A stretch of DNA of 64,000 bases from Bugula neritina (GCA_964035545.1 OZ037772.1:5150233-5214232), one strand, 5' to 3'; shown: positions 46,415-61,849, counted from the stretch's first letter. Notes: a model not told the origin generated them from the sequence alone. Numbers and translations are program-made.

Positions 46415-46708
46415 ATGGCCATCACCAGTGACAAAGACACATTAAAAGAGTGTCTTCTGAAAAAAGACACAAACGGATTCGAAAAGGCGTTGGAGGATAT
46501 TCCGGATGGGGAGCTAAGAGAGTTTCTGTTACAAGACGCCTGGACAGATCTCTTTAACCAGACTCACATTGGTCTCTTCAGCCTAGTTATTTTATGCAAA
46601 GGTTGGCAATCTTTCTGTTATATTTAACAGCAGGTTTATGTTATAGAATCTCTAACACACTTCACTTATGCAGTACTAAAATATTCAACTATATTCAATA
46701 TATGTTAC

Positions 46709-46799
<91 letters not shown>

Positions 46800-49700
46800 T
46801 AGTTTCTGTATTCTGGTGTGTGTGTGTGTGCGTGCGTGCGTGCACGCGAGCGTGCGTGTGTGTGTTAACTGTTATTTGTGTTTATATCTTATTTTGATGA
46901 TCTTTTATTTGCTCTTATCAATATTTCTGAGCCTTTACAAAATTGCTTTTATCAACAATGCTCTTTCTGTTAGATGCGGAATGGGAGAAAATATTCGAAC
47001 AAGTAATAGTTAAACTCTCAGCAGCTGACTGCGTTTCGATTTTGGAAACAGTTGACTCCAACGGAAACAACATCTTACATTATCTCAACAAACATCAACT
47101 GACCTCTACTGCAAATTTGCTATTAGACAACCTTTCAAAGGAAGTGAAATTTCATTTGATGACAAAACAAAATAAAGATGGAAATACGCCTTTACACTCA
47201 GCTGTAGAAGGAAACAATGTCATTTGGGTTAGAACATATGTCGAGGTGTTAAAAAGCTCCGAACCAGAAGATTTAGAAGTAATTTCTGAGATGGTCAATA
47301 ACAATGGATACAGCCCTCTGCATCTGGCAGTGAGCCAAAGCACACCAGATGTGGTGAAACAATTACTCAGCGATATGACACCATGTCAACGAAAAAAGAC
47401 CATTAAAAAATGTCGTGTTAAAGAATACCAGGAGCTGTGTGCTGACTTAGGTCAGTTTGAGTACATAAATAGAAGGTATAAAGAAAATTCTTTACACTTG
47501 GCAATCAAAAGCAAGCAAGAGAAAATTATCCAAGTCTTGCTGCAAGGTCTCCTATCGAAAGATCTACTCAGCATCATCATGGAGAGAAACTCAGATGGCG
47601 AAACAGCCGTTCATTTAGCAGTAAAGGACGGTTCTTATGAGATGTTGATGTTGATGCTAAAGCCTTTAGAATTAGGTGATCTTTTGGAAGCCCTTGATGA
47701 AAAGGAACGGCTCACCAATGAAAATGTCTTACAATTAATTATTAGAAGAGAAAGAATGGAGATGTTAACACTTTTGATTGAAGTTTTATCTAAAAGTACA
47801 GCTGCACTAACTAACTTTGAAATGCAAAGCTGGCCCAAAAATATTTGTATTGCAGCGTTACGCACAGCAATTGCATTCTCAAATCAAGAGGCATTTGAAA
47901 GTTTATTGAAAGTTGTGAAAAGTATAACAAACTGTTTGACCATTGAAAGGATTGGGGATGAACAAGAAAATCTGCTTCAGTATGTTGTGAGATATGGTAA
48001 TGAAGAGTTACTTGAATCGCTGAAAGGAGTTTTAGATGTAAAAGGGTGGAGTGATGCCTTGTTGTACTGTGACAGGGCAAAAAACAATGCCCTTCAACTT
48101 TCCATTGTCCATGCTAAATTAAAAGCATTACGTTATATGCAAGACACCACTAGTTCAGATCATGAAACTTGGGAAAAGGCTCTCTTTCAACAGAACTCTC
48201 GCCAAAATAACATTTTACATGAAGCCGCAAAGTTTGGCAACTTTGAAATTTTTGAAAAATTTCTGAAGTCATTAGGTGAAGAAAAGCAATTGGAAATTAT
48301 TTCCCAACTAAATCGGACCCAAGAAACAGTACTGCATATAGCTGTGCAACATAGAAACCCAGCAATAGTTGAAAAACTGTTGGACATTTTGAGCAAGGAC
48401 CCTGAGCAGCTCAAAAAAATATATACTTCATCAAACCCAAATACTATCCTACATCTAGCAGTAAGTATTAAGCATGAAAAGATTTCATGTTTTCTACTAG
48501 AAAATCTTTCATCAATTTTGGAAGCAAATTCTGAAGAGATTTTAGAAATTTTAGGCACCGTTAATAAAAGTGGAAACACTGTTCTTCAAGCGGCTGTAGA
48601 AACTGGTTCCACAAAAATCATTGAAAAAATTCTAAAAATACTAAGCCCTAAAACTTGCGAGCAATTACTAACACACTCAAATAAAAACGGGAAAAATGCT
48701 CTCCATTTAGCAGTAATGACAAAAAAGCCAAGTATTTTGAATTTGCTTTTAAACAGTTGTTCATTGATTGAGCGAAAGAAGTTACTAAACCAAGAAGATC
48801 ATGAGAGCTTTACTCCTAGGTCATTAGCCATAAAGTTCCAAATGATAGAGGTTGTTAGCGCTATACTTTACGCGTTGCACAATGAGGAGGTTTCACCTGA
48901 GCACAATGCCCTTCAGGAGGCAATTGGCAGTGCTGACAAAAAAGCATTTATTGAAATTCTGAAGGAGACGTCTCCCCACTTAAGCTCAGATCTCAATGCG
49001 GAAGATCCCTTGATGCACTTGGCCATACAATCAGGCAACCTCCAAATGCTAAAGGTTTTATTGAAGTTTCCAATTCAGAAATATTCTGGACACTCTCAGT
49101 CAAGTATACCATTTGCAGAGCAGGAAAACTCAGATGGTGAAAATGCTATATTTGTGGCAACTCGCCTAAAAAGTGATGAAGCATTGCGATTGCTGCTTGT
49201 CAACCGAATGCCATCTCTTGTTTTCTCTAGGAATAAAAAAGAAGACACTGCATGTCATATTGCAGCTGAGAAAGATGATGTTGAAAGACTGAACATTATA
49301 TTATCATCCCTTGATGCTAACTTAAAGCTCAGAGCGTTAAAGCTATGTAACACTGATAAAAAAAATGTTCTGTGCTCTGCTGTCGGTAGTGGTGGACTAG
49401 AGTGTCTTAAGTACATCATCCGAACAGTTCCTTCAGCACAGGGTTTGGAAGACTTAATTGTAGACCCTAGAGGCACTAGTGCCCTCAAGCTAGCTGAAAA
49501 ATTACATCACAATGAAGCTTTGAGAGAACTTAGTGGCCATGTTAGAGCTCAAAAAGTGCAATACAGTGATCTGGTACCTAAAATTCAACCTGGCAATGAA
49601 CAAGAGGTGGCAGATTTTCTCAAAACTCTGAACGTATCTGAAATGACAAATGTACTTGGGGAAGAAGACGAAAATAAAAGCAATGTTCTGCATGTTGCTG

Positions 49701-52700
49701 CTCAAGTTGGCAATGCAAAAATGATGAGTTTGCTAATTGAAAAGCTTCCAGCAAAACAACAAGTAGAGTTTCTTCAAAAGGCTAATGCCAAAGGTTTCAC
49801 TCCTTTCCAACTAGCCGTGGAACAACAAAATGAATCAGTTGTAAAAGCAATGTTGGAGTTGGCTGCAAAGCACAGTAGCAATGTATTGCTGAAATCCTTC
49901 TTTAATTGTTTACCATCAAATAATCAAAAGAAAATTCTCATGGCCACACCTGAAAGCAAAAGTTTTTTGTTTTACCTTTTAGCTTTGAAAAAAGTCAATG
50001 CGATTGGAATGCTGATAAAAATGTTGCCAGAAAAGGAACGAGTGGATGTCATTTTTCAAACAGATCTAAAGAGATATTCTCTGTTACATCATGCTGTGAA
50101 GCAAGAGAATGCCGATGCTTTAGATAAGTTAATCGAGCTAGTGAAACCAGATGATTGGGAACAGTTTATTACTGAGCAGTCGAACTACCGTGAAAATTTG
50201 ATTGTCATGGCTGTGAAGTTGCCTCAAACCGGCATGATAAGCAAAATTCTGAAACCTCTGCCACAGAATCAGAGAGTTAAAGCTATTTTATCCACATCAA
50301 GTAGGGAGGTAGATGTCATGAAATGCATTATTGAAAACACGAAAATGCTGGAATCATTGCTAATGGAAGCTGCAGAAAGCAAAAAAGGGCAAATCACCGA
50401 CTTATTTGTTCCGTGTGAGTACAAGCATCAAGCAATTGAGCAAGCTTTTTATATGTCGGTGAAGTACCAATGTGCGGAGATGGTGAAAGCTCTGCTAGAT
50501 CTTATGGATCTTGATCAAAGAAGAGAAGTAATTGCTGATCGACAAAATAAAAAAGGAAACAGCATTTTTCACATTTTATCTAGTTCTAAAAATTTGGAAA
50601 TGATCAGGATGTTGCTTGAGTCGCTCTCACAATTACCACAAAGACAAAAACTTGGAGTCATTTGTTCAGCCAACAAATATGGATACAACTCAGTTTCTTT
50701 AGCGGTGGATAAAGACATAGGAGCTTTGCTTGAGTTGCTCAAGAAGAGCGCGCCATTACCATCAGACTTACGGGAGAAAATTGAAAATGAAATTGAACGA
50801 CCCGTTGTAAAAGAAGAAAGCAATTCCACTTCTGAGGAACTGCTAAGCTTTCTGGATGATAGGCAAAAGACAAGTTTATTGATCCAGCAACTCCGTTTTC
50901 GTGCCGTCGAAACTAAGAAAGACAGCTTTCTAAAAGTAACAGGATGGTGTTCCTCTTTTGCTGAAGATTGTTCAGCTTTGCAATCCTTTTCTATTCCCCA
51001 TCGAAACCTGATGCATATTGCACTCAAAATAAATTCAATGAAGAGCGATGAAGCAGATAATCAGGTAAAACGTTTTGAATTAGTGTTGGAGCAGTTGAAC
51101 ACTAGCGAGATCGAACATATGCTTACACAAAAAGATGGCGATGGATTTTACGCTCTGGAACTATCTGTTATACATCTTAACCATCGCGTGCTGTCTCAGA
51201 TTTTTGCAAAAGTAAGCCCAAGATGCATTGTACAGGTTCTTACACAGCGTAATATTCGCCAAGTCAGCATTCTTGAGATTGCAGAAGAATTGCACCGGGA
51301 TGTGAAAACTGTGTTCCAAGATATTCCTACTGAGAAACAGTGGGACGTCAAAGTCCTCCTTTTACAGAAAGCTATAGAGTTAGAAAACAGCTCCCTCCTG
51401 GAATTGATGTGCACCAACTTTGAGGAAACAGTAGTTGGTGAGCTTCCTATGCTAAAAGAGAACTTTAGTATGTCTCAATCACAGATAAGTCTGTTGAACA
51501 CCGTGAGCGATACATACGTAATACCCGCTCCTCAGCTTAAAGCTAAATGCTACGCTGTTTTAATTTATGAATCCAGTTTTGAAAATGAAAAAACCTGCAT
51601 TTACCAGCTATTAAAAGACATGGGATTTGAGACAGCATGTTGCAAATGGGACAAAAAAGATGATAGAACCGGGATATTTGATAACATGGCTATCGATGTA
51701 TGGAAACCATGCTCATTGCTACTGATGTTTGTGTTGGGAGACAGAATAGCTGGAAGTGATAAAGTTGCGCTACAAACTCTGGAGGCTTTACACTCGTGTC
51801 CTGAAACCCCAATAGTAAGTATTGAAAATGTAACTAAGTTTGTAACCATAAAAATGCTTTTACCCCAATGCTAATATCATTTAAGTTGGACTTCCAAAAT
51901 AGTTATTCCAGCTAAGAAAAAACATTTTGCCACTTGATTCAGGATTAAATTTTCCTAAAAAGTATTCTATTATCTGCATAACTAAATTTAGCTAGCTTAT
52001 TAAGAATATCAAACTTTTTATTATGAGACTTTCCAAATTATATTCAATAAATTTAGTTATACAATTGCAGCAACAAACACACTAAAATTAAACAAGTAAC
52101 TCGGATTAAAAAAACTGATTCTAATATTAAAGCTTAATAAATTTCAGTAGTTAGCAATACTCTAGTTTCAGCAACAAAACTATGCGAAGCAAAACGTTTC
52201 AGTTTCTCAAAATTTTAAGTGCACTAATAACTTTTGTAAAACACTTTTTAATGTATAATATAATGAAATATATAGCATAAGCAAGTAGTAAAATGTTTGG
52301 TATATGTTGTAATAAAAACACTGTTGATTTGTGATCTTTTGTAGGTGTTTTTCTATGAGGCATCGAATTTGGAGACTGAAAGAAAAATAATTTCTAAGAG
52401 AAAGCATTCAGCTCTGATTGGTGCTAAAGCTAGTCAACAGACTGATGGAACCTTTCTAAGACAAGTAGTTCAAGAACTCAAAGCTTCTCAGGACAAAGAT
52501 ATTGTGAAATTGGGTTTGCAAGTTGCTCAGCGGTTGGGTGAACCTGTGGAATACTGGTCCTGGCTGCTAAAGACGCCAAGTCTGCCTTCTTCATTTGGCG
52601 TCGAAGGTAATTTTAAATACACCTTGCTCATGCATTGTGATGGAGTGTTTTGCTGATGGTGTATGGTGTAAGCTTTAAAAACTTGAAATTGTATGATAAA

Positions 52701-55049
52701 TGAATTAGCATATTATATTGCGCCTATAATATATAATTAGCAGATGTAATTTAAAGTTATTGCTATTCAAAATTAATTCTGTTTTCAATTTCAGAGGCAG
52801 AGGGCGAGTTTTCGAGTGACAGTTGTTCCGAGATGACAGATGACAGTTCTGAGTTTGATTGGCAACCTATACCATCTGAAGTCTACCAAAATATTTCCGA
52901 GTATGTTCAGTCTTTTTAAAGAAAGTAGATTATGTCTAATACATATATAATTGCCTTAAAATTTGTTTTTATAGAGAAGTATATTGTTGTCGCTGTATAA
53001 ATAATGTTTAAATTATTATCTATTTTCTTTCTCAGTTGAACAGTACTCTATTTTTCGTTTACTCCTGTAGAATCTGCTCAAGACACAATGTGAAAAACTT
53101 TGCGCTCACACAAGACCCTGGTAACTGGCAAAATATAGTAATCGGTGTTGAAAACAAAACAGAAGACTTAGAAAAGGACTTTAATAAGTTGAACAATGAC
53201 TTTGCATCAGAAAACATTGGCTTTACTATTACAGTTGAAACCAGTGGTTCCCACCTTTACACTAAGTTCCACGCACCTGCAAACTTAAAACGTGAAAAAT
53301 GGGAAAACCCAAATTGGGTTAATGCTAGTAGTGATTCGGCATGTGAATTGTTTGTTCAAGCTGTTGAAAGGAGGAGAGTGGCACCAGAAAATTCAGTTTA
53401 TTCAGTTGGCCCTGCCCACGTGGTAATTGATGAGGAGATGCATGAAGAATTTTCCAATGCTGGCCAAATTGAAAATGCTAGACGAGGTGTAGAACAATTT
53501 ACCACCAACCACCGCTGTGTCTTACATCAGCAAGATGATGGTGACAGACTAGACATTGGATATCCGCCATTGATGTGCTATCGGCTTTATTGCTGGGTCA
53601 AGGAAAATATTGACATCAACGATAACGATTCGTGTCCAGATTGTCGGGAATTCGGAAGGAGGATCAACCAGCTACGTATAGAAACACAATACATAGAAAC
53701 GTCAAAAATGCACCAGGAAATTAATGGAAAAGGAAATTTTGATGAAATCAGGCTATGCACTCACCTCATAATGAACGACATGATGTTCCTACCGTTAGCC
53801 AGAGATAATGCTCATGAGTTAAGTAGAGAATTACACTATAATAACATTTATAAAGTTAGCACAATAGGTGAACTTCGTAGCTTACGAGGGAAGACAATAA
53901 AAGTTAATAACTACAAAGGCCGCATAAGTGAGATATTTGTGAAGTATCGCCGCAGTGCTGAAGGTCACAACAACATTTTCGGATTCCATGTTCAATTCAC
54001 AATTACAACTGATGAGTAAGCATATTTACTTGTTCATTTTTAATCAATTTTGAATTAATTGCATTTAGCAAAATATGTCTTAAATTTATATATTAAGCCA
54101 AAAACTTTTCAGTAACAGCAGAATTGCACTTACAGTTGTTGAATATTGTATATAACAATTGAAAACTTAAATTTTTTAATAGGTCAAACCTAACTAATAA
54201 CAATTAGGTAACATTATTCTATCAATGTACTTATTTCTTTCTTGTCACTTTTCCTGTAAAAGCTTGAGAACTGAAAGACGTAATTGGAAAACTGAAAGAC
54301 GTAATTTGAGAACTTTGGTAAAACTCTCTAAAGAGACAAACATTGACATAGGGTCTCGGAACTGGACTAATCAAATGGCTCATTTTCTACAACATATTTG
54401 AACATATAGTAGGGGGCTATAGATATGAGGTTTATTTGAAAGCAATGTAGCTGTTAGCTGTGTGAAGAAAATTATGTTTTCACTAAACTCAAAAACCTTA
54501 GAATTCTATTCAATGTTAGAAATTAAAAATACATAAAATGATAAATAGCCTAAACATTTCAAGCAGTTAAATCAAAAACAAAAAATGTTATCTGAGTATT
54601 TAATTTAAAATATAGAAGTATAGTTTTTGTCTTTTCTAAGTGATTTTTCAGAATTTGGTGCACGGTTTCAATCAATAAAATTGTAATACAACATGAATTT
54701 CCTTAAATAAAGCCAGTGCAGTTTTTGAGTCAGAGTCTGTATGAATTTTCAAACACCCGAGTGTTACAGTACATGATATAATTATAAGTAATGAAACTGT
54801 TATTTCAGCTCATTGGAAAGAGGGGACTGTGGTCGTATTCTCTACCTCAAAGCTAAAAATCCTGAAACAGAAAAGGCAGAATGGCAACCATTGGGCATGT
54901 ATGTGGGAATGAATGAACTGACGCAAAACTTGAAAAGCAAAATTTACCGTGCTGTTTTGCTACACCAAACGTTCAGAGAAATGGAGGAAGATTATCCACA
55001 TCATATTAATGAAGTCCGTCTTTTTGGTGGTAGAAGACATAGACAGTGA
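46415..55049 (+). CDS. Multi-exon gene (~2193 aa): ankyrin-repeat array + pseudo-caspase domain + acidic linker + chymotrypsin-fold (Cys-nucleophile) protease domain. Exons 46415-46601, 46974-51814, 52345-52606, 52795-52900, 53071-54015, 54809-55049
   Basis: All 5 introns are GT..AG with matching phases (1,0,1,2,2). The joined CDS is 6582 nt, open from ATG to TGA. Many ankyrin motifs (GNTPLHSAV, GYSPLHLAV, GETAVHLAV, ETVLHIAV, GKNALHLAV, GFTPFQLAV). Caspase-like motif order at 51542-52590. Protease motifs PAH / NDMMFL / GDCG / LGMYVG in exons 5-6. Confidence 0.85.
46714..46865. repeat. (TA)n then (TG)n/(CGTG)n microsatellites in the first coding intron
   Basis: Direct inspection. Confidence 0.95.
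46974..51814 (+). CDS. Giant 4841-bp exon encoding the ankyrin array and first half of the caspase-like domain
   Basis: 1643-aa ORF without stops; acceptor ctgttAG at 46972-46973, donor GTaagt at 51815. Confidence 0.92.
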
Positions 55050-56249
55050 AAATCACATATCTAAATTTACTCATTTGGTTGGTTTAGTTGAAAATATGAA
55101 TCATGAGAACTACATTTTAGTGTCTCCTTTTTGCTATTTTTGCTATTAAATTTAGATTAACTTCATGTAACATCTATGATTATTTTAATGAACTCTGCGA
55201 CTTATTTTTACAGTAAGATAAATTATGCAAATAGCATCAGTTCCTTCTTACATGACATGACATTGTGAAACCAGTTTTTCAGCTTAAACTTAAAGTGCTA
55301 ACTCCGAGTTGATCAAAAACCTACAATATTTTACTTTGAAGTACATTTCATTTTAAATCATCATATTATTGTGATAGATTTCCTCATGAGGTATACATAT
55401 GTGTGAGTGTGTATGCATTCTCTTATGTTTGTGTGTTAAATATGTTACAACACCAAGTTTCAATGTAGTTGACAGAAAACATTGTAGTTTTTTTATTATA
55501 TGGATGTTATCTATACTATACTAATCTTTAAGTACTAGAAGTACCATTTTAATCTTTAGAATTGAATTAATATATTATATGTTTGTAATTTCACAGTTTT
55601 CATAAAAAGTTTGATTCAACATTTGATTTCAATTGTTAACAGAATGCTGTGCTGGTAATATTCACTATTGTACTAGATTTGTATAATAATATATGCTTTT
55701 ATTGCATCATTTGATTTTTTCTCACCAATTGTTTGAAATTCTTTACACTACAAAATGCTTAGATTATTAAATAAAATGTTGTGTAATGCGCTACAAGTGT
55801 GGTTTTATTTTGGTTTCTCAAACGGTAATCAATCACTGTCTGGTTTAAGTCGCTTTTGTATGTATGGATCTTCTCATCAGCTTTAGTGAAAAATGTATTA
55901 GCAAGCTCCAAAACCCCATTTCTTGCATACTCTAGTATCTTCTCTCTACCATCATTCTTCCTGCCCACTGACTTTCCTCCATATCATCTTTCAAAGCCCT
56001 CTAGTCTATTTGTTCCAACATGTCCATTCAAATCACCCGCCAGTATCAGTTTTTCGGAAGCCGGGATGCGTGTAGTGATTCCTTCCAGTTGGTTCCAGAA
56101 TCGCTGCTTCTCCTCTTCACAACCTTGTTGGGTTGCATACACGGTCACTATGTCGTATGTCTTTTCAGGTGTTACTAATTTTGCTGCCATTATTCTACCA
56201 GACACTCTGTCAGTCACCATTACTTTATCTTTCCACTCCTTAGGCATAT

Positions 56250-56598
56250 TGTAATGGGATTACGTAGTATAACAATGGGGTTGTCCCCTCTTGTATGGGA
56301 ATACTTATAAAGTATGTTCTACTATCCAATCAGAGGGACCGGAAGGCAAGGTTCCGGTCAAGTGACTGTTCGCGGGTTAGCCAGCAGAAACCATGTGTTG
56401 TTGAGAGCAAGGACTCGTAGTAGTAACATGTGTTTGTAATTGATCAGTGTTGTATAATCGTTTGATGTGGTGTTATAATTATGTTTATCGAATTAAATAA
56501 AGGTTATCGTACGCAAGCCAGACTATTGATTGCTAGTTAAATTGACACTAAAATACGCATACAATCCACGCTTGATAATTGCGCTAAAACTCACAACA
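56250..56598 (+). repeat. Gypsy 5' LTR
   Basis: About 8 substitutions and 2 single-base indels versus 61075-61421 (manual count). Confidence 0.95.
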
Positions 56599-56599
56599 G

Positions 56600-56617
56600 T
56601 GGTGGCAGCGGTGGGAT
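56600..56617 (+). promoter_or_regulatory. Primer-binding site, complementary to a tRNA-Leu 3' end
   Basis: Reverse complement is ATCCCACCGCTGCCACCA. Confidence 0.8.
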
Positions 56618-56633
56618 CTTTGCGTATATCAAG

Positions 56634-57555
56634 ATGACAGAAAGAGGCACAAAGCTACCCATTCGGAGGAATGAAGGTGAGGAAGATAACGTTGCTATAC
56701 CTATAGAACCAGAAGTGAGAGTGCATAAGGAATGTTATGAAAAGAAGTACCGGCTGAGGGTGCCCACCTTCTCAGGTGAGGAGTCGGTGGAGCAATTCGT
56801 TCAGGAATTCCAAGATGTAATGGCCGCCCAGAATAGCATTGCTCAAGCTCAGGATGGCACTGTCAGACAAAGCCAAGCCATACGGAGTGGGACCAGACAT
56901 CGACGGGATCTTTGCTTCCCTGCGGGCCCGTTTTGGTATCTCCGCTGTAGATGCACGGGCCCGTCTCCAAAGACTGCGGCGTAATCCTCACACGCCGCTA
57001 CAAGAGCACGCTACCACGGTCATGAGACTGGTGCAGATCGCGTTCCGCGATCTGCCTCAAGTAAACCGTGAGAGGTACACTTATGATGCCTTCGTGCAAT
57101 CCATCAACAACTTGGGACTCCATCACCAACTCCTGGCGAGGGGAGTCACCACGGTCGAAGGTGCACTCGCAGAAGGAGAGGCTTACCTTCTGGCGAGTCA
57201 GCTGCACCGGAACCGTGTGACTTCTCGTCAGGTAGACATGGAGCCCTCCGCTGCTCCTACCGCTCCCAACGCGAAAACTCCAGCGGTGGCCAAGGTGACG
57301 CAGATGACGGTAGCATCGAAGGTCGCACAAATGACCGACATGCTAGCCGAACTGGTCTCCGCCTTGGCTCCTCTCAGCCAGTTAGACACTACCCATGAGC
57401 TAGACGGGCCACAGGTACAGTCACCTGGTAGAGGACACCCCTCTTGCTGGGAGTGCGAAAGACCAGGACACTTCCAGAAACATTGTCCCCGAATTCAACC
57501 AGGGTTAAACTACGACGGCCCGCAAATGCTCCCACATCCGGCGGGCCGCCGATAA
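56634..57555 (+). pseudogene. Gypsy gag (frameshift near 56835)
   Basis: VPTFSGEESVEQFVQEF, capsid-like helices, CCHC knuckle. Confidence 0.85.
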
Positions 57556-57839
57556 ATTCCCAAGGGAGGACACAGTGGCATCCGCCACGCCGGACGTCTG
57601 TCCGACACCTCGCGGAACGGCCACCAGGACGGCAAGCAGGCTGTACAAGCCGCTCTCCGCCGGTGTTCTCAATGCCACTCTGCAACAGGTTCAACAAACG
57701 ACGGACTGCAGAGTCTGCGAGGGGAAAGGCCCAAACACCGCCACATCCTCGACAGCTGGTCCCCAGTCGTCGTCAGAAACCTAACCCCTCCACCAGGGCG
57801 AGGGAGATGAGGTCACCCAAGATACCACTACATCCCCAC

Positions 57840-59658
57840 GAGAGCAGCCTGTTTCTACGAGGACAGATAGCCGGCAAGCCTGCCAAATTCCTGTTAGACA
57901 CGGGCTGCACCACCAACCACCATTCTTCGACACATTCAGCGCTCAGATCTGAAGCAGGTTGGGACCGTACAAAGGCGATCATGGCACTCTGGCAGACGGG
58001 TTGTGCATCCCCTTCTACGGTATTATTGAACTCCCTGGGAGCGTCTGTGACCAGACCATCCAGGAGAGGTTCATCGTCGGACAGCTCCAAGAGGACGCCA
58101 TCCTTGGGATGCCATTCTTACAACGACACGGATGTCGCATCGATTTTGGTAAATCTGCGATGTTTATGGGCGGCAGGGAGCTCGCCTGTGTCGATAAGTT
58201 TGGCCATCCTCTAACGGGAGAAGAGCCGGTAGTACGTACCTGTACTATGCCCGGCCACTCCAGGGGCGCCGTCCACCGCCAGGTAGACGGTGACCTTACC
58301 TCCAGGACGGAAGTTGTAGAGAGCGCGCACCCAAGCGTCCCACCTGCCCGCAGCTCTAACCAGCTGACACGGAGAGGAAAGATCTCAGTGCCATGCCTCC
58401 ACTCCCCCTCGGAGACGGTGAACCTACCACCCACCTCTCCACCGAGCTGTACTCCTTCTGTTCAAGAAGGTAACAGCAGGCCATCGGGGGAAACCGCGCT
58501 GAGAAGTCTTCTAGAGAGCCTGTCTCTAGGGCAGAGGACTGCCTCACCCCACGCCCCGCACAGCCCGGAGACTCGTGGGGGAGAATCAGACGGTTGTGTA
58601 GATAACAAGAAGCGCCAAGAGACGGCCACGTTACTACACAAAACCGAGGCTGCACCTCACCTTGGGGACCCTGACATGCCCCCAGAGATGGCACAGGACC
58701 TCCACGCCGAACCCGTCTCAATCAATAGCGTCAAGGAGCTACGACACCTACAAGAACATCTTCCGGGAGTGGTAGCCGACGTCTATCAAATAAAACGGGA
58801 AGGGCGACGACCCAGTGACAAACAGCGGAAGCTGGGCTGCGCCAAGTGGCAGCTGTACTGCCGACATTGGAACGCACTGCAAATCAGGGCCGGATGGTCT
58901 ATTGACCATATCTTTGGCCGCTAACCACTACCAGCCAGACCAAGAGAGGACCCTCTGTCCTGCCGCCATCCGCCGGGCATTGATAGAAGAGGTACACCAA
59001 CAGGCTCACGGGGGAGCCCAACAGGTGCTCACCAAACTACAACTCTGGTGGTATTGGCCTAACATGGAGCGTGAAGTACGGCGCAGAATTAGGCAGTGCC
59101 GAGTCTGCCGGGCCAGTAAACACGGCCGCCCTCCTAAGAAGGGGGGGGCGGCGAAGGCAAAATGCAGAGAGGCCCGGGCAGACGGAGACTGCTGACCTGG
59201 TCGACAAAACGCCCAGGATGCAACCCAAAGTTGTGGCGAGGCAGGAAAAGCCACACCCGTTCAGGGAAGTGCGCTCATCGCCTTCAGCGTCCAAGCTGCC
59301 GCCACCATTTCCTAGGTCAGAAACCGACCTGGAAGTGCAAAACCCCCCCACGGGAGAGGCTCTGTACGGAGATGCTGGGGAAGCTCCATTTGTCACAAAC
59401 TGGCTGGAAGCACCACCCAGGAGACGTGACCGTCCACGGGTGAGTAAACCGCCTTGGTTGGGGACGACACCCCGAAAACGGTGTTCTAGGCAAACCCCCG
59501 CGTACCTCAAGGACTTACCACGTGCCGTTCAGGGCGCGGTCAAACGTCCTAACAGGTACCTACGGGGAAGAAGGCAAAACATGGGAGTTATGAACACCAC
59601 GGGAATATCAACTTTTGCCTCGGCGGAATCTCAAAAGAGCTTAATACGCCGGAAGTAA
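57840..59658 (+). pseudogene. Gypsy pol remnant: protease, integrase Zn-binding domain and C-terminal tail
   Basis: FLLDTGC..DAILGMPFL and HHCC motifs; several frameshifts; no YxDD motif. Confidence 0.8.
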
Positions 59659-59893
59659 TAAGTCCTAGCCACGTTTCACAACCACGCTGCTCGCTCTTCT
59701 ATCGCATTGATACAGCTCTGAGTAGACGTACGTAGAAATCATAAACATACCACTCTCGTTCACAATGGCTTGCCAAGAATCGAGAGGTGAGTTAGTTATG
59801 TTTTTGGTACGAGGACTAAACTGTATTAATCAGCTTTACTGTAACAGAATAAGCTGGAGACTCGGTAATAATTTTTAGTGGTGGAAACTCACA

Positions 59894-60793
59894 TTGACTC
59901 TAAGACTGAACAGTCTGTCACAGCAGTGTGTGTTTTCGATCAACTATTCGTTAACTGAGTCTCACGAGTATCTAATTGAGTTAAGTACCCACCAGGCTGT
60001 ATACGCCGGTCGTACTCAGTGTACCCTCTTTACGCTGTTATACTCTTACAGATCACACTCAATCGACCAACTTCGGGTCACAAGATCTACCCCCCTCTCC
60101 TCCTTGGATAACGGACCGAAAACAGACAACGAACTGCCCGTGGCACTGCGCCGAAGACATAAATGGGTGTCACGACGGACGGAGCGACAAATTGAAGAAG
60201 CCTGGGGACCAATTGGCTCACAACGAACCTGCCACGTGTGTTATGAGGAGCTTCCCTCACACCAAGGACTGCGGCTGCATGTGAATGTACACTTCTTACT
60301 ACGCTTCTGTCCGTGCGGATTTCACGACGTATACCCATACCTTATCGTGGCACATATGATGGACTGTTTCGCAGGCAAAGGCTATGTAGTGGACGCGGAC
60401 AATTACGATCAATACCTAGAAGCGGTCAAACCAGTGGTTAAGAAGGCTTTAACCTGGGCCGCATTATCCTCCGGGTTTTATACAATGCTAACAGCCGCCC
60501 GTCAGAAATCCCCTATGGTAAAAACGGTCGCTGCAATCATACCCCGGCCAGACAACACCCCCATGGAAGCATCAGATTCTCCAGGAGAAGCGACGCCAAC
60601 TCCAACCAGGCCTAACCGACTAGCAACCGTCGAGGTAGGACTCCTACGACTGCAGGATGAATTTACCCAATTGGCCCCCGACTTACTCAGCACTACAATG
60701 AGCCTTAGTGAACTGAAGGGCTCAGTGGGATGCCTTAAGCGTAGACTACGTGCACGGCAAGCACGACACTGGACTCAGTCCCTGCAAAACTAG
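59894..60793 (+). CDS. Extra Gypsy ORF: Zn-finger-like region + coiled coil (start uncertain)
   Basis: 299-codon open frame between pol and the 3' LTR; CHVC..LRLHVNVH..CPCG..H..C; C-terminal heptads. Confidence 0.65.
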   Translation: MTLRLNSLSQQCVFSINYSLTESHEYLIELSTHQAVYAGRTQCTLFTLLYSYRSHSIDQLRVTRSTPLSSLDNGPKTDNELPVALRRRHKWVSRRTERQIEEAWGPIGSQRTCHVCYEELPSHQGLRLHVNVHFLLRFCPCGFHDVYPYLIVAHMMDCFAGKGYVVDADNYDQYLEAVKPVVKKALTWAALSSGFYTMLTAARQKSPMVKTVAAIIPRPDNTPMEASDSPGEATPTPTRPNRLATVEVGLLRLQDEFTQLAPDLLSTTMSLSELKGSVGCLKRRLRARQARHWTQSLQN

Positions 60794-61074
60794 GAGCTGG
60801 AAGTTGACAATTCTACCCCGCATATCCTCAGGGTACTACATTGTGATCGTGTAAATGCTTGATCTGCCAACAACCGATCTGTGTGACGATCCAGGTCTCT
60901 CTCTCTGTAGCTGGCCAGCTGTGTGTCGGCCGTCTGGTTATCTTACTTATATATATGTCGTACGTTTGATATTTCTCTTCTTTTTCTTTGTGGATTTTCC
61001 TTACCTATGTCATTTTTGCATTATTATACTATTTTGCTTTATCAGAAAGTAGGGCTTTCTGCTGGTGGGGGTGG

Positions 61075-61421
61075 TGTAATGGGATTACGTAGTATAATAA
61101 TGGGGTCGTCCCCTCTTTATGGGAATACTTATAAACTATGTTCTACTATCCAATCAGAGGGTTCGGAAGGCAAGGTTCCGGTCAAGTGACTGTTCGCGGG
61201 TTAGCCAGCAGAAACCATGTGTTGTTGAGAGCAAGAACTCGTAGTAGTAACATGTGTTTGTAATTGATCAGTGTTGTATAATCGTTTGATGTGGTGTTAT
61301 AATTATGTTTATCGAATTAAATAAAGGTTATCGTACGCAAGCCAGACTATTGATTGCTAGTTAAATTGACACTAAATACGCATACAATTCACGCTTGATA
61401 ATTGTGCTAAAACTCACAACA
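61075..61421 (+). repeat. Gypsy 3' LTR
   Basis: Follows the PPT and is followed by TSD ATAT. Confidence 0.95.
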
Positions 61422-61849
61422 ATATTGCAACTCCATTTCTCGATCTTCCACCTCCACTATAATATAGTTTAGAACCAATTCCAATGTTTCTCACCTTCCT
61501 CCTAATTTACTATCTGTCCATCACATTTCCTGGAATGCATAGTATGTGTATTTTTCTTCTATTCGTCATATCTGCTACCCCTCTACTTTTCCCGTTAGGG
61601 TCCCTATATAAATTGAGGGATGCCAGTCTCAACTTTGTTTGACTCGCTGATTTTCTTTTCACAGCGTCAATGCATGAGTGCCGCTGTGCATCGCTTCCGG
61701 GGTATACCAAGACATTAACTGTCTCTGTTCTGACTGTCTCCGGCATAATTGTTTTATTATTTATGCTCTTCCTGAGTTCTAACTTCTGTGTTTACTCGCG
61801 GGCATGAGACCGGCTGTCTGCTCCGCTAGTTTGCTGAGTCTTTAGGCCA

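Follow-up and report, generated by a model that had tools for sequence, protein, structure and literature searches.

The DNA analysed here, hereafter the window, is a 64,000-nucleotide stretch of the genome of the bryozoan Bugula neritina (GCA_964035545.1 OZ037772.1:5150233-5214232). Our subject is a gene on its plus strand, between positions 46415 and 55049, in which a long ankyrin-repeat array is joined through a middle domain and an acidic linker to a predicted cysteine protease of the chymotrypsin fold. Six exons joined in phase give a coding sequence of 6582 nucleotides (nt), or 2193 codons and a stop, with no internal stop codon. The longest single piece is an open frame of 1643 codons (46943-51874), and the listing of open reading frames (ORFs) places smaller frames in compatible phases on either side of it. 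The exons and the parts of the protein that they encode are as follows.

46415..46601, plus strand: exon 1, with the ATG and first 62 codons, a helical repeat pattern as in the ankyrin array, and an in-phase donor, AAAG/GTTGGC
46974..51814, plus strand: exon 2, the ankyrin array followed by the first half of the middle domain
46974..51544, plus strand: ankyrin-repeat array, about 35-38 units of about 40 residues as judged from the spacing of the repeat motif, covering residues ~63-1586
51545..51814, plus strand: first half of the middle domain (tail of exon 2), with Asp1652 (51740-51742) at the would-be caspase His position
52345..52606, plus strand: exon 3, second half of the middle domain, with Ser1683 (52363-52365) at the would-be caspase Cys position; both joints are present in RNA contigs
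52795..52900, plus strand: exon 4, 106 nt, an acidic linker rich in Ser, Asp and Glu; joints 52606>52795 and 52900>53071 are found in three to four runs
53071..54015, plus strand: exon 5, a small alpha/beta subdomain, the first beta-barrel and most of the second barrel of the predicted protease
54011..54016, plus strand: site of a 15-nt in-frame deletion relative to a sister lineage (see below), directly before a conserved GTAAGC donor, from the pairwise alignment with the sister-lineage contig
54809..55049, plus strand: exon 6, the GDCG motif, the last strands and C-terminal helix of the predicted protease, and the stop codon (55047-55049); joint 54015>54809 is found in three runs

RNA contigs from four runs, belonging to four studies, were compared with the stretch 49100-55099. 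They contain four joints, every one of the GT..AG type (51814>52345, 52606>52795, 52900>53071 and 54015>54809), and a single contig of 1641 nt passes from the tail of exon 2 through exons 3, 4 and 5 into exon 6. As spliced contigs can derive from RNA alone, they show transcription of the gene and join exon 2 to exons 3-6. The same contigs place the acceptor of exon 5 at 53071, which gives exactly 2193 amino acids, and thereby rule out two other acceptors, one at 53036, which would break the phase with the 106-nt exon, and one at 53044 (in phase, giving 2202 amino acids). The junction between exons 1 and 2, 46601>46974, is a prediction supported by phase, splice consensus and the repeat pattern common to both exons. 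An acceptor-like TTTTAG just 5' of the ATG points to a possible 5' untranslated exon further upstream. Hydropathy analysis of the 2193-residue protein revealed no hydrophobic segment that would suggest a signal peptide or a membrane span. A preliminary description of this DNA had proposed six phase-consistent exons forming one stop-free protein of this length, including a 106-nt exon missed by the ORF track, and had seen no evident signal peptide or transmembrane segment. The coding sequence and its hydropathy agree with that description, both joints of the 106-nt exon are present in the RNA contigs, and the continuity of transcripts from exon 2 to exons 3-6, which it had left to be checked, is borne out by spliced contigs from all four studies.

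Intron 1 is largely filled by a long TA-rich microsatellite (46640-46760), which appears as I-Y-I-Y repeats in one ORF.

The ankyrin array is matched by the Pfam model Ank_2 with an E-value of 2.3e-65 and 217.6 bits (cut-off 27.3) over 13 stretches, and the Ank, Ank_3, Ank_4 and Ank_5 models all score far above their cut-offs. Its DNA is single-copy in the genome. Pfam detected no Death-fold, TRADD-N or STAND NTPase module in the 2193-residue protein.

Conservation in the C-terminal domain was judged from the family alignment. The predicted catalytic triad of the window protein consists of His1915 (53417-53419), Asp2035 (53777-53779) and Cys2121 (54828-54830), and these follow the order expected of a PA-clan protease, His, then Asp, then a nucleophile within a G-D-S/C-G box. 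The histidine is invariant and lies in a P-A-H motif, and the aspartate is at least 90% conserved within N-D-(I/V)-A-L-L. The box around the nucleophile reads GDCG in five copies (the window, the sister lineage, two paralogues and Watersipora), GDSG in two tandem copies on contig C6 and one metagenome contig, and GQSG in other members; one of these three forms is present in all ten copies whose last exon was read. The exchange of serine and cysteine inside the classic G-D-S-G box among paralogues is strong internal evidence that Cys2121 is the nucleophile. Between the His and the Asp the family carries a further cluster of the form C-P-x-x-C ... C-x-H, which in the window protein comprises C1987 (53633-53635), C1990 (53642-53644), C2028 (53756-53758) and H2030 (53762-53764). 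Two of its cysteines are at least 90% conserved. The cluster sits in a low-confidence loop of the structural model described below and may bind zinc.

Sequence searches against Pfam, NCBIfam, PADLOC and the PDB returned no match for the window exons, the complete Watersipora domain (P0017) or any of 30 aligned family members. The same three query sets gave no Pfam match to Nal1_C, NAL1_N or Peptidase_S64 at E-values up to 1-5, nor to Peptidase_C3, C24, C37 or similar families. The fold was tested on a homologue, the complete Watersipora domain P0017:60-440, modelled by AlphaFold with the family alignment, and not on the window protein itself. The model, with a predicted local distance difference test (pLDDT) score of 77 and a predicted template modelling (pTM) score of 0.62, shows in order a small alpha/beta subdomain, a first barrel, a second barrel and a C-terminal helix, and its strand pattern fits two six-stranded beta-barrels followed by that helix. 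Within it the histidine opens a short helix after a strand, the aspartate opens a strand, and GDCG precedes a strand of the second barrel. The best 50 Foldseek matches in the PDB are all PA-clan proteases, with E-values from 3e-5 to 1e-3, and include factor B, NAL1, factor IXa, V8 and the 3C proteases of senecavirus and hepatitis A virus; HtrA and DegQ are also among the fold matches, and the 3C proteases rank below HtrA, NAL1 and factor B. In VIA-align, 49 of the 50 matches listed are PA-clan proteases or protease-like domains, the Tulane virus protease among them. Among the named matches in BFVD, serine proteases and polyproteins of picorna-like, sobemo-like or potyvirus type predominate, at similarly weak E-values. 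The ESM Atlas returned trypsin-like clusters, others that carry the names Nal1_C, NAL1_N or Peptidase_S64, and, at template modelling (TM) scores of 0.63-0.67, clusters without a name from molluscs and ascomycetes. TM and Z values of the fold matches are moderate. Nearly every match agrees, as does the motif evidence, and we therefore regard the assignment of the fold as firm: the C-terminal domain is predicted to be a PA-clan protease with an intact His1915-Asp2035-Cys2121 triad. Within the clan, the model places it tentatively nearest the NAL1/Ssy5 (S64) and HtrA/Deg groups. Thus the long ankyrin array and the C-terminal, cysteine-nucleophile protease of chymotrypsin fold named in the preliminary description both find support, the former from Pfam and the latter from the fold searches of the homologue, the conserved His, Asp and Cys, and the serine of the paralogues.

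A metagenome-derived genomic contig from a sister lineage (L009) is colinear with positions 51128-56251 of the window and allows the gene to be compared between two genomes. Against the window, the mismatches per exon are identical for this contig and for the RNA contigs (3, 4 and 78 in exons 3, 4 and 5), and the DNA of exon 5 and of the exon 2 tail is single-copy in the 216-Mb assembly. A close paralogue as the origin of the diverged RNA was rejected, as these exons are single-copy at the DNA level. Together, the equal mismatch counts and the single-copy DNA indicate that the RNA represents the orthologous gene in the sister lineage, which we infer to be a cryptic sibling species or else a haplotype that has diverged strongly. 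Across the overlap the two genomes agree at all eight splice sites. There are 143 substitutions in 2253 coding bases, none of which creates a stop, where simulation expects five (probability of no stop, 0.0066). The exons contain a single insertion or deletion, the in-frame 15 nt, compared with 20 events in 1681 bases of the four introns. Omega, the ratio of nonsynonymous to synonymous divergence, lies overall between 0.49 (NG86) and 0.67 (maximum likelihood), with values of 0.42-0.55 in the protease exons and 0.85-0.93 in the ankyrin tail and middle domain. Divergence is also uneven, from 1.1% in exon 3 (three differences in 262 nt, the most conserved exon) to about 8% in exons 5-6, much the same as in the adjoining introns. 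This pairwise comparison argues that the reading frame is under selection, yet that the protein evolves fast.

The 15 letters missing from the window are present in RNA contigs of three runs, and their loss shortens by five residues a loop that lies four residues ahead of GDCG. The length of this loop varies across the family. A 15-nt micro-exon in intron 5 was considered and rejected, as the letters are absent from the window and, in the sister lineage, lengthen exon 5 without changing its frame.

A separate observation concerns RNA contigs of 2.4-2.8 kb from three runs and three studies, which follow the ankyrin array to 51584 and beyond that point bear no likeness to the window over more than 255 letters. 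No copy of a 30-mer taken from this continuation was found in the window or the genome. The continuation could belong to a paralogue in the sister lineage, to an isoform with another C-terminal module, or to an assembly chimera.

The protease belongs to a family that is expanded in this genome. An exhaustive HMMER search with exon 5 returned 23 proteins, one of which (P0008, a long repeat protein) was set aside as spurious. The relatives comprise a sister-lineage ORF with 86% identity, two named proteins (a hypothetical protein of Bugula neritina and an uncharacterised protein of Watersipora subatra) and otherwise unnamed ORFs on metagenome or SRA contigs, so that the named members come from two bryozoans only. 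The Bugula protein is 88% identical to another locus in the genome analysed here, from which we assign the latter to the Bugula neritina complex. Word-index protein searches with the protease recovered the sister-lineage ORF or two or three members only. When the family profile was run against the genome it gave 32 exon matches at about 27 loci, several of them clustered on contigs C6, C7 and C8. At two of the other loci, C6:8.746 Mb and C6:10.835 Mb, Pfam-confirmed ankyrin ORFs lie upstream of the protease exon. A search by tblastn upstream of the paralogues, suggested earlier as a way of finding the same architecture elsewhere, matched the ankyrin array at these two loci only and the middle domain at none. 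Paralogue P0018 has a comparable acidic linker, with the W-x-P-I-P-S motif. The preliminary description knew of no described protein with this combination; taken to mean a one-off, that statement is not supported: the protease has roughly 27 loci, at least two others of which lie behind ankyrin ORFs, and an ankyrin array is followed by a caspase exon at yet another locus. The pairing of ankyrin repeats with the protease is a recurring theme in this genome. What appears to be new here is a protease family that has no Pfam model, the alternation of Cys and Ser within it, and its fusion to giant ankyrin arrays; a literature search for the protease family found no match.

In Watersipora subatra (OY755167.1, L011:140-3334) the gene of the protease family is preceded on the same strand by a TPR_12 array of over 1,000 residues, with 6.6 kb between the end of the array and the gene. 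This may be an analogous repeat-plus-protease arrangement that the annotation divides into two genes.

The middle domain occupies residues ~1587-1763, about 180 residues of beta-alpha-beta type, and is split by intron 2. If it is aligned as a caspase, the catalytic His-Cys dyad is absent, its positions being taken by Asp1652 (or Gly1651) and Ser1683, a replacement that fits a pseudo-enzyme and a domain unrelated to caspases equally well. Neither half gave a relevant match in Pfam, NCBIfam, PADLOC or PDB sequences. In particular, Pfam returned no Peptidase_C14 match at E-values up to 10; no TIR, TIR_2 or SEFIR match was found in Pfam, PADLOC or NCBIfam; and the locus is absent among the matches listed in a genome-wide PF00656 search. 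Word-index protein searches with the domain returned nothing, and neither half has a detectable paralogue in the genome, while a weak alignment connects the exon 3 half to the N-terminal end of the Bugula paralogue P0018. By language-model features in the ESM Atlas, the ten best named clusters for the first half are all TIR_2, TIR or SEFIR (score 0.90, recognition 3103), and exon 3 gave no TIR-like or other family signal. AlphaFold on the first half alone produced an unusable model (pLDDT 40.5), and hhalign of the spliced domain against home-made caspase and TIR alignments gave a probability below 1% for both. A caspase hidden Markov model (HMM) built from 51 exon fragments of caspases in the same genome aligns T-D-G-T-F-L-R-Q...L-Q-V-A-Q-R-L to the p10 helix pair at 3.2 bits, a score reached by none of 500 shuffles. 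Over the 10-kb gene region antisense ORFs score equally (~4 bits), and for this reason we do not count the match as support.

Caspases are themselves abundant in this genome, with at least 177 exon-level Peptidase_C14 matches, a very large expansion. One intact copy (L020, at C4:5.00 Mb, 125 bits) carries serine at the catalytic Cys position in the context F-F-D-A-S. On the same contig as the window, 2.35 Mb away, a single ORF of 2452 codons (L063:9-7367, within G000:C8:7567008-7576378) is almost wholly ankyrin, with 27 Ank_2 stretches, and a caspase exon lies 1.8 kb downstream of it on the same strand (L063:9167-9379). Caspase exons occur genome-wide, for example at C1:32.8-35.5 Mb, C6:2.5-6.3 Mb, C7:5.0-7.7 Mb and C8:4.82-5.04 Mb, and a cluster lies 110-330 kb upstream of the window. 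At three further loci (L059, L061 and L062, at C7:5.085 Mb, C3:4.51 Mb and C8:4.885 Mb) the ORFs upstream of caspase exons share a conserved non-ankyrin region that contains a P-Q-Y-V-Y-H/Q-Q motif and a C-terminal Cys-rich stretch. Because non-ankyrin ORFs precede several caspase exons, the caspases seem to be joined to more than one type of N-terminal module.

Downstream of the gene, positions 56251-61422 of the window form a block of about 5.2 kb that is richer in GC (52-55%, against ~35% around it) and holds long ORFs, one of them endonuclease-like on the minus strand. The sister-lineage contig lacks the block and runs from 56251 straight on to ~61422. The block probably represents a retroelement that inserted recently, 1.2 kb beyond the stop codon of the gene. 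Elsewhere in the assembly, the small contig C17 (L042 and L043, C17:1451-11433) carries long intron-less ORFs with a bacterial-type TIR start (F-I-S-Y-S) and long C-terminal regions, and looks like bacterial sequence, from a symbiont or a contaminant.

The middle domain had been described as a pseudo-caspase, and on that reading a true caspase-fold pseudo-enzyme would dimerise or recruit an active caspase, the ankyrin repeats would sense a ligand, and the C-terminal protease would be the output. There are resemblances that invite it: the order of strands and helices is caspase-like by eye, with G-D in place of the caspase H-G and E-A-S in place of Q-A-C; in the caspase L020, too, the catalytic Cys is replaced by Ser within a comparable motif; the stretch LLKDMGF is common to the middle domain and exon 1 of local caspases; the domain follows directly after an ankyrin array, and the 2452-codon ankyrin ORF has its caspase exon just downstream; and the helix-pair score of the caspase HMM exceeds all 500 shuffles. 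Against this stand the equal scores of antisense ORFs, the negative Peptidase_C14 and hhalign results, the lack of a genomic paralogue, the TIR-like features of the first half and the unusable AlphaFold model. Unlike caspases, moreover, the domain has no profile match, neither catalytic residue and a much shorter first half. The caspase fold is thus a candidate for this domain and no more, and we hold the full pseudo-caspase scheme to be unlikely. We give about the same weight, and thus regard as unlikely, the view that it is a TIR-like (flavodoxin-like) signalling or oligomerisation domain, which would make the protein an ankyrin-TIR-protease chain. The concordant ESM Atlas clusters speak for it, and the spacing of the first strand, conserved Gly and third strand fits by eye what we take to be the TIR_2 consensus, a lead only. 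Yet only 147 of 256 features are shared, below the usual level for true family members, and a third of shuffled proteins also reach ten concordant matches. The profile searches in Pfam and PADLOC found no TIR, exon 3 lacks TIR-like features, a TIR HMM built from five sequences of the same assembly is equalled by 165 of 500 shuffles, and Gln or Thr seems to stand where TIR domains have their catalytic Glu. Either way, its residues suggest a non-catalytic beta-alpha-beta domain that carries the catalytic residues of neither caspases nor TIR NADases. We lean slightly towards a caspase-derived, non-catalytic adaptor, because of the ankyrin array with a downstream caspase exon at the other locus and because strands and helices follow each other in the second half as in a caspase p10 (strand-helix-helix-strand).

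The protease invites other explanations, of its origin, its role and its present state. His-Asp-Cys with G-x-C-G on a chymotrypsin fold is the signature of viral 3C, 3C-like and 2A proteases, and the domain could in principle have been captured from a picorna-like virus. Picornavirus 2A and hepatitis C virus NS3 proteases carry structural zinc sites, which recalls the Cys/His cluster, and viral proteases or polyproteins appear among the weak fold matches of Foldseek, VIA-align and BFVD. These matches are no stronger than the cellular ones, with E-values of ~1e-5 to 1e-3 in both, and the Atlas clusters closest to the domain are of cellular origin, from molluscs, ascomycetes and bacteria, with Nal1_C and S64 among their names. 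In contrast to viral 3C-type proteases of ~180-210 residues, the domain here has ~390 and belongs to a cellular, multi-copy family with conserved introns and paralogues whose nucleophile is the Ser of a canonical GDSG, and nothing viral was noticed next to the genes; a viral capture is therefore highly unlikely. A role in regulatory processing, as in yeast Ssy5 or plant NAL1, which would make the protein a signalling component and not an immune effector, has more to recommend it. NAL1 and Peptidase_S64 are the nearest named families by shape and features, both names occurring on neighbouring Atlas clusters, and they share the chymotrypsin-type double barrel after an extra N-terminal subdomain. 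Ssy5 and NAL1 cut transcription regulators, and for NAL1 cleavage of a transcription factor has been described (PMC12012508). What separates the window protein from them is the lack of any sequence-level membership among the 30 members, the Cys for Ser, the extra Cys/His cluster between His and Asp, the fusion to a 1,500-residue ankyrin array, and some 27 fast-evolving, clustered copies per genome, which together with such huge variable repeat arrays are unlike single-copy regulators; a purely regulatory role seems quite improbable. HtrA, DegP, DegQ and DegS differ too, as the window protein lacks both a PDZ domain and a Pfam match to Trypsin_2, has Cys as its nucleophile and is predicted to be a cytosolic fusion with ankyrin repeats. 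Lastly, the gene in the sequenced genome might be a relaxed or dying copy whose protease has been crippled by the five-residue loss beside its nucleophile. The deletion relative to an expressed sister lineage, the high omega overall and in the ankyrin tail and middle domain, protease divergence near that of introns, RNA evidence drawn wholly from the sister lineage, and a setting amid transposon debris with the 5-kb insertion close by would all be expected of such a copy. A dying gene would not be expected to keep its frame, all ten splice sites and the whole triad, or to show no stop in 143 substitutions, and the deletion is itself in-frame at a site where loop length varies in the family, which makes this account distinctly unlikely.

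On balance we favour, with confidence somewhat above even, a functional, transcribed gene of a cheilostome bryozoan that encodes a soluble protein of four parts, an ankyrin solenoid, a middle domain, an acidic linker and a PA-clan protease, fitting a role in immunity, cell death or allorecognition. Several points weigh against this reading. All of the RNA comes from the sister lineage and is 5-8% diverged from the window. Constraint is weak, the nonsynonymous divergence of the protease exons (0.07) being close to the local intron divergence. The window allele lacks the five residues before the nucleophile, and impairment is possible but not likely, since the length of this loop differs among family members. 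At the five other loci for which upstream DNA was read (C8:9.116 Mb, C3:13.36 Mb, C3:21.65 Mb, C2:0.366 Mb and C8:11.65 Mb), no ankyrin ORF was found in the ~10-20 kb covered before the protease exon, and the fusion is therefore not universal in the family.

If the four-part reading is correct, the ankyrin solenoid of about 1,500 residues would serve as a scaffold for binding a partner or ligand, and the tethered protease would cut in cis or in trans once the array holds a target or senses its ligand. HtrA/Deg proteases are known to be active only as oligomers, and NAL1 is an intracellular protease active only when assembled; by analogy, activity here would probably require self-association. 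For NAL1 the active form is a hexamer, which cleaves a transcription factor inside a hexameric cage (PMC12012508). The fast evolution of the protein and the expansion of the gene family would be in keeping with a function in immunity, cell death or colony allorecognition, which we suggest by analogy. One could go further and propose a new bryozoan family of one-chain sensor-proteases, in which variable repeats (ankyrin, perhaps TPR in Watersipora) recognise a ligand that signals danger or non-self, a caspase- or TIR-like domain without catalytic activity brings about self-association, and a protease that toggles between Cys and Ser is switched on. In this complete form we regard the proposal as speculative and rather unlikely.

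Cellular chymotrypsin-fold proteases of animals almost always use serine, and the cysteine versions are known mainly from RNA viruses. The presence of Cys and Ser paralogues within one genome therefore offers a natural system for studying the exchange of the nucleophile. In marine invertebrates, lineage-specific arrays of ankyrin, TPR or LRR repeats occur with caspase, TIR, Death or protease modules (Kaur et al. 2021, PMC8195603). Like the families in the part of that survey we draw on, the gene described here combines a repeat array with an enzymatic effector, a large lineage-specific expansion and fast-evolving parts; unlike them, it belongs to a bryozoan protease family and has an ankyrin array ending in a PA-clan Cys protease, neither of which is mentioned in that part of the survey. 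The ankyrin fusion, the ~27 loci and the fast evolution are thus reminiscent of immune and cell-death families that are particular to single lineages of other marine invertebrates. Bryozoans live in colonies and carry symbionts. To our knowledge their immunity and allorecognition are almost unstudied at the molecular level. If the sensor-protease reading is true, the family would give innate immunity in animals, or allorecognition between colonies, a new arm built on proteases, beside the caspases; and if its role is merely regulatory, like that of NAL1 or Ssy5, it would still extend a poorly known group of proteases to animals.

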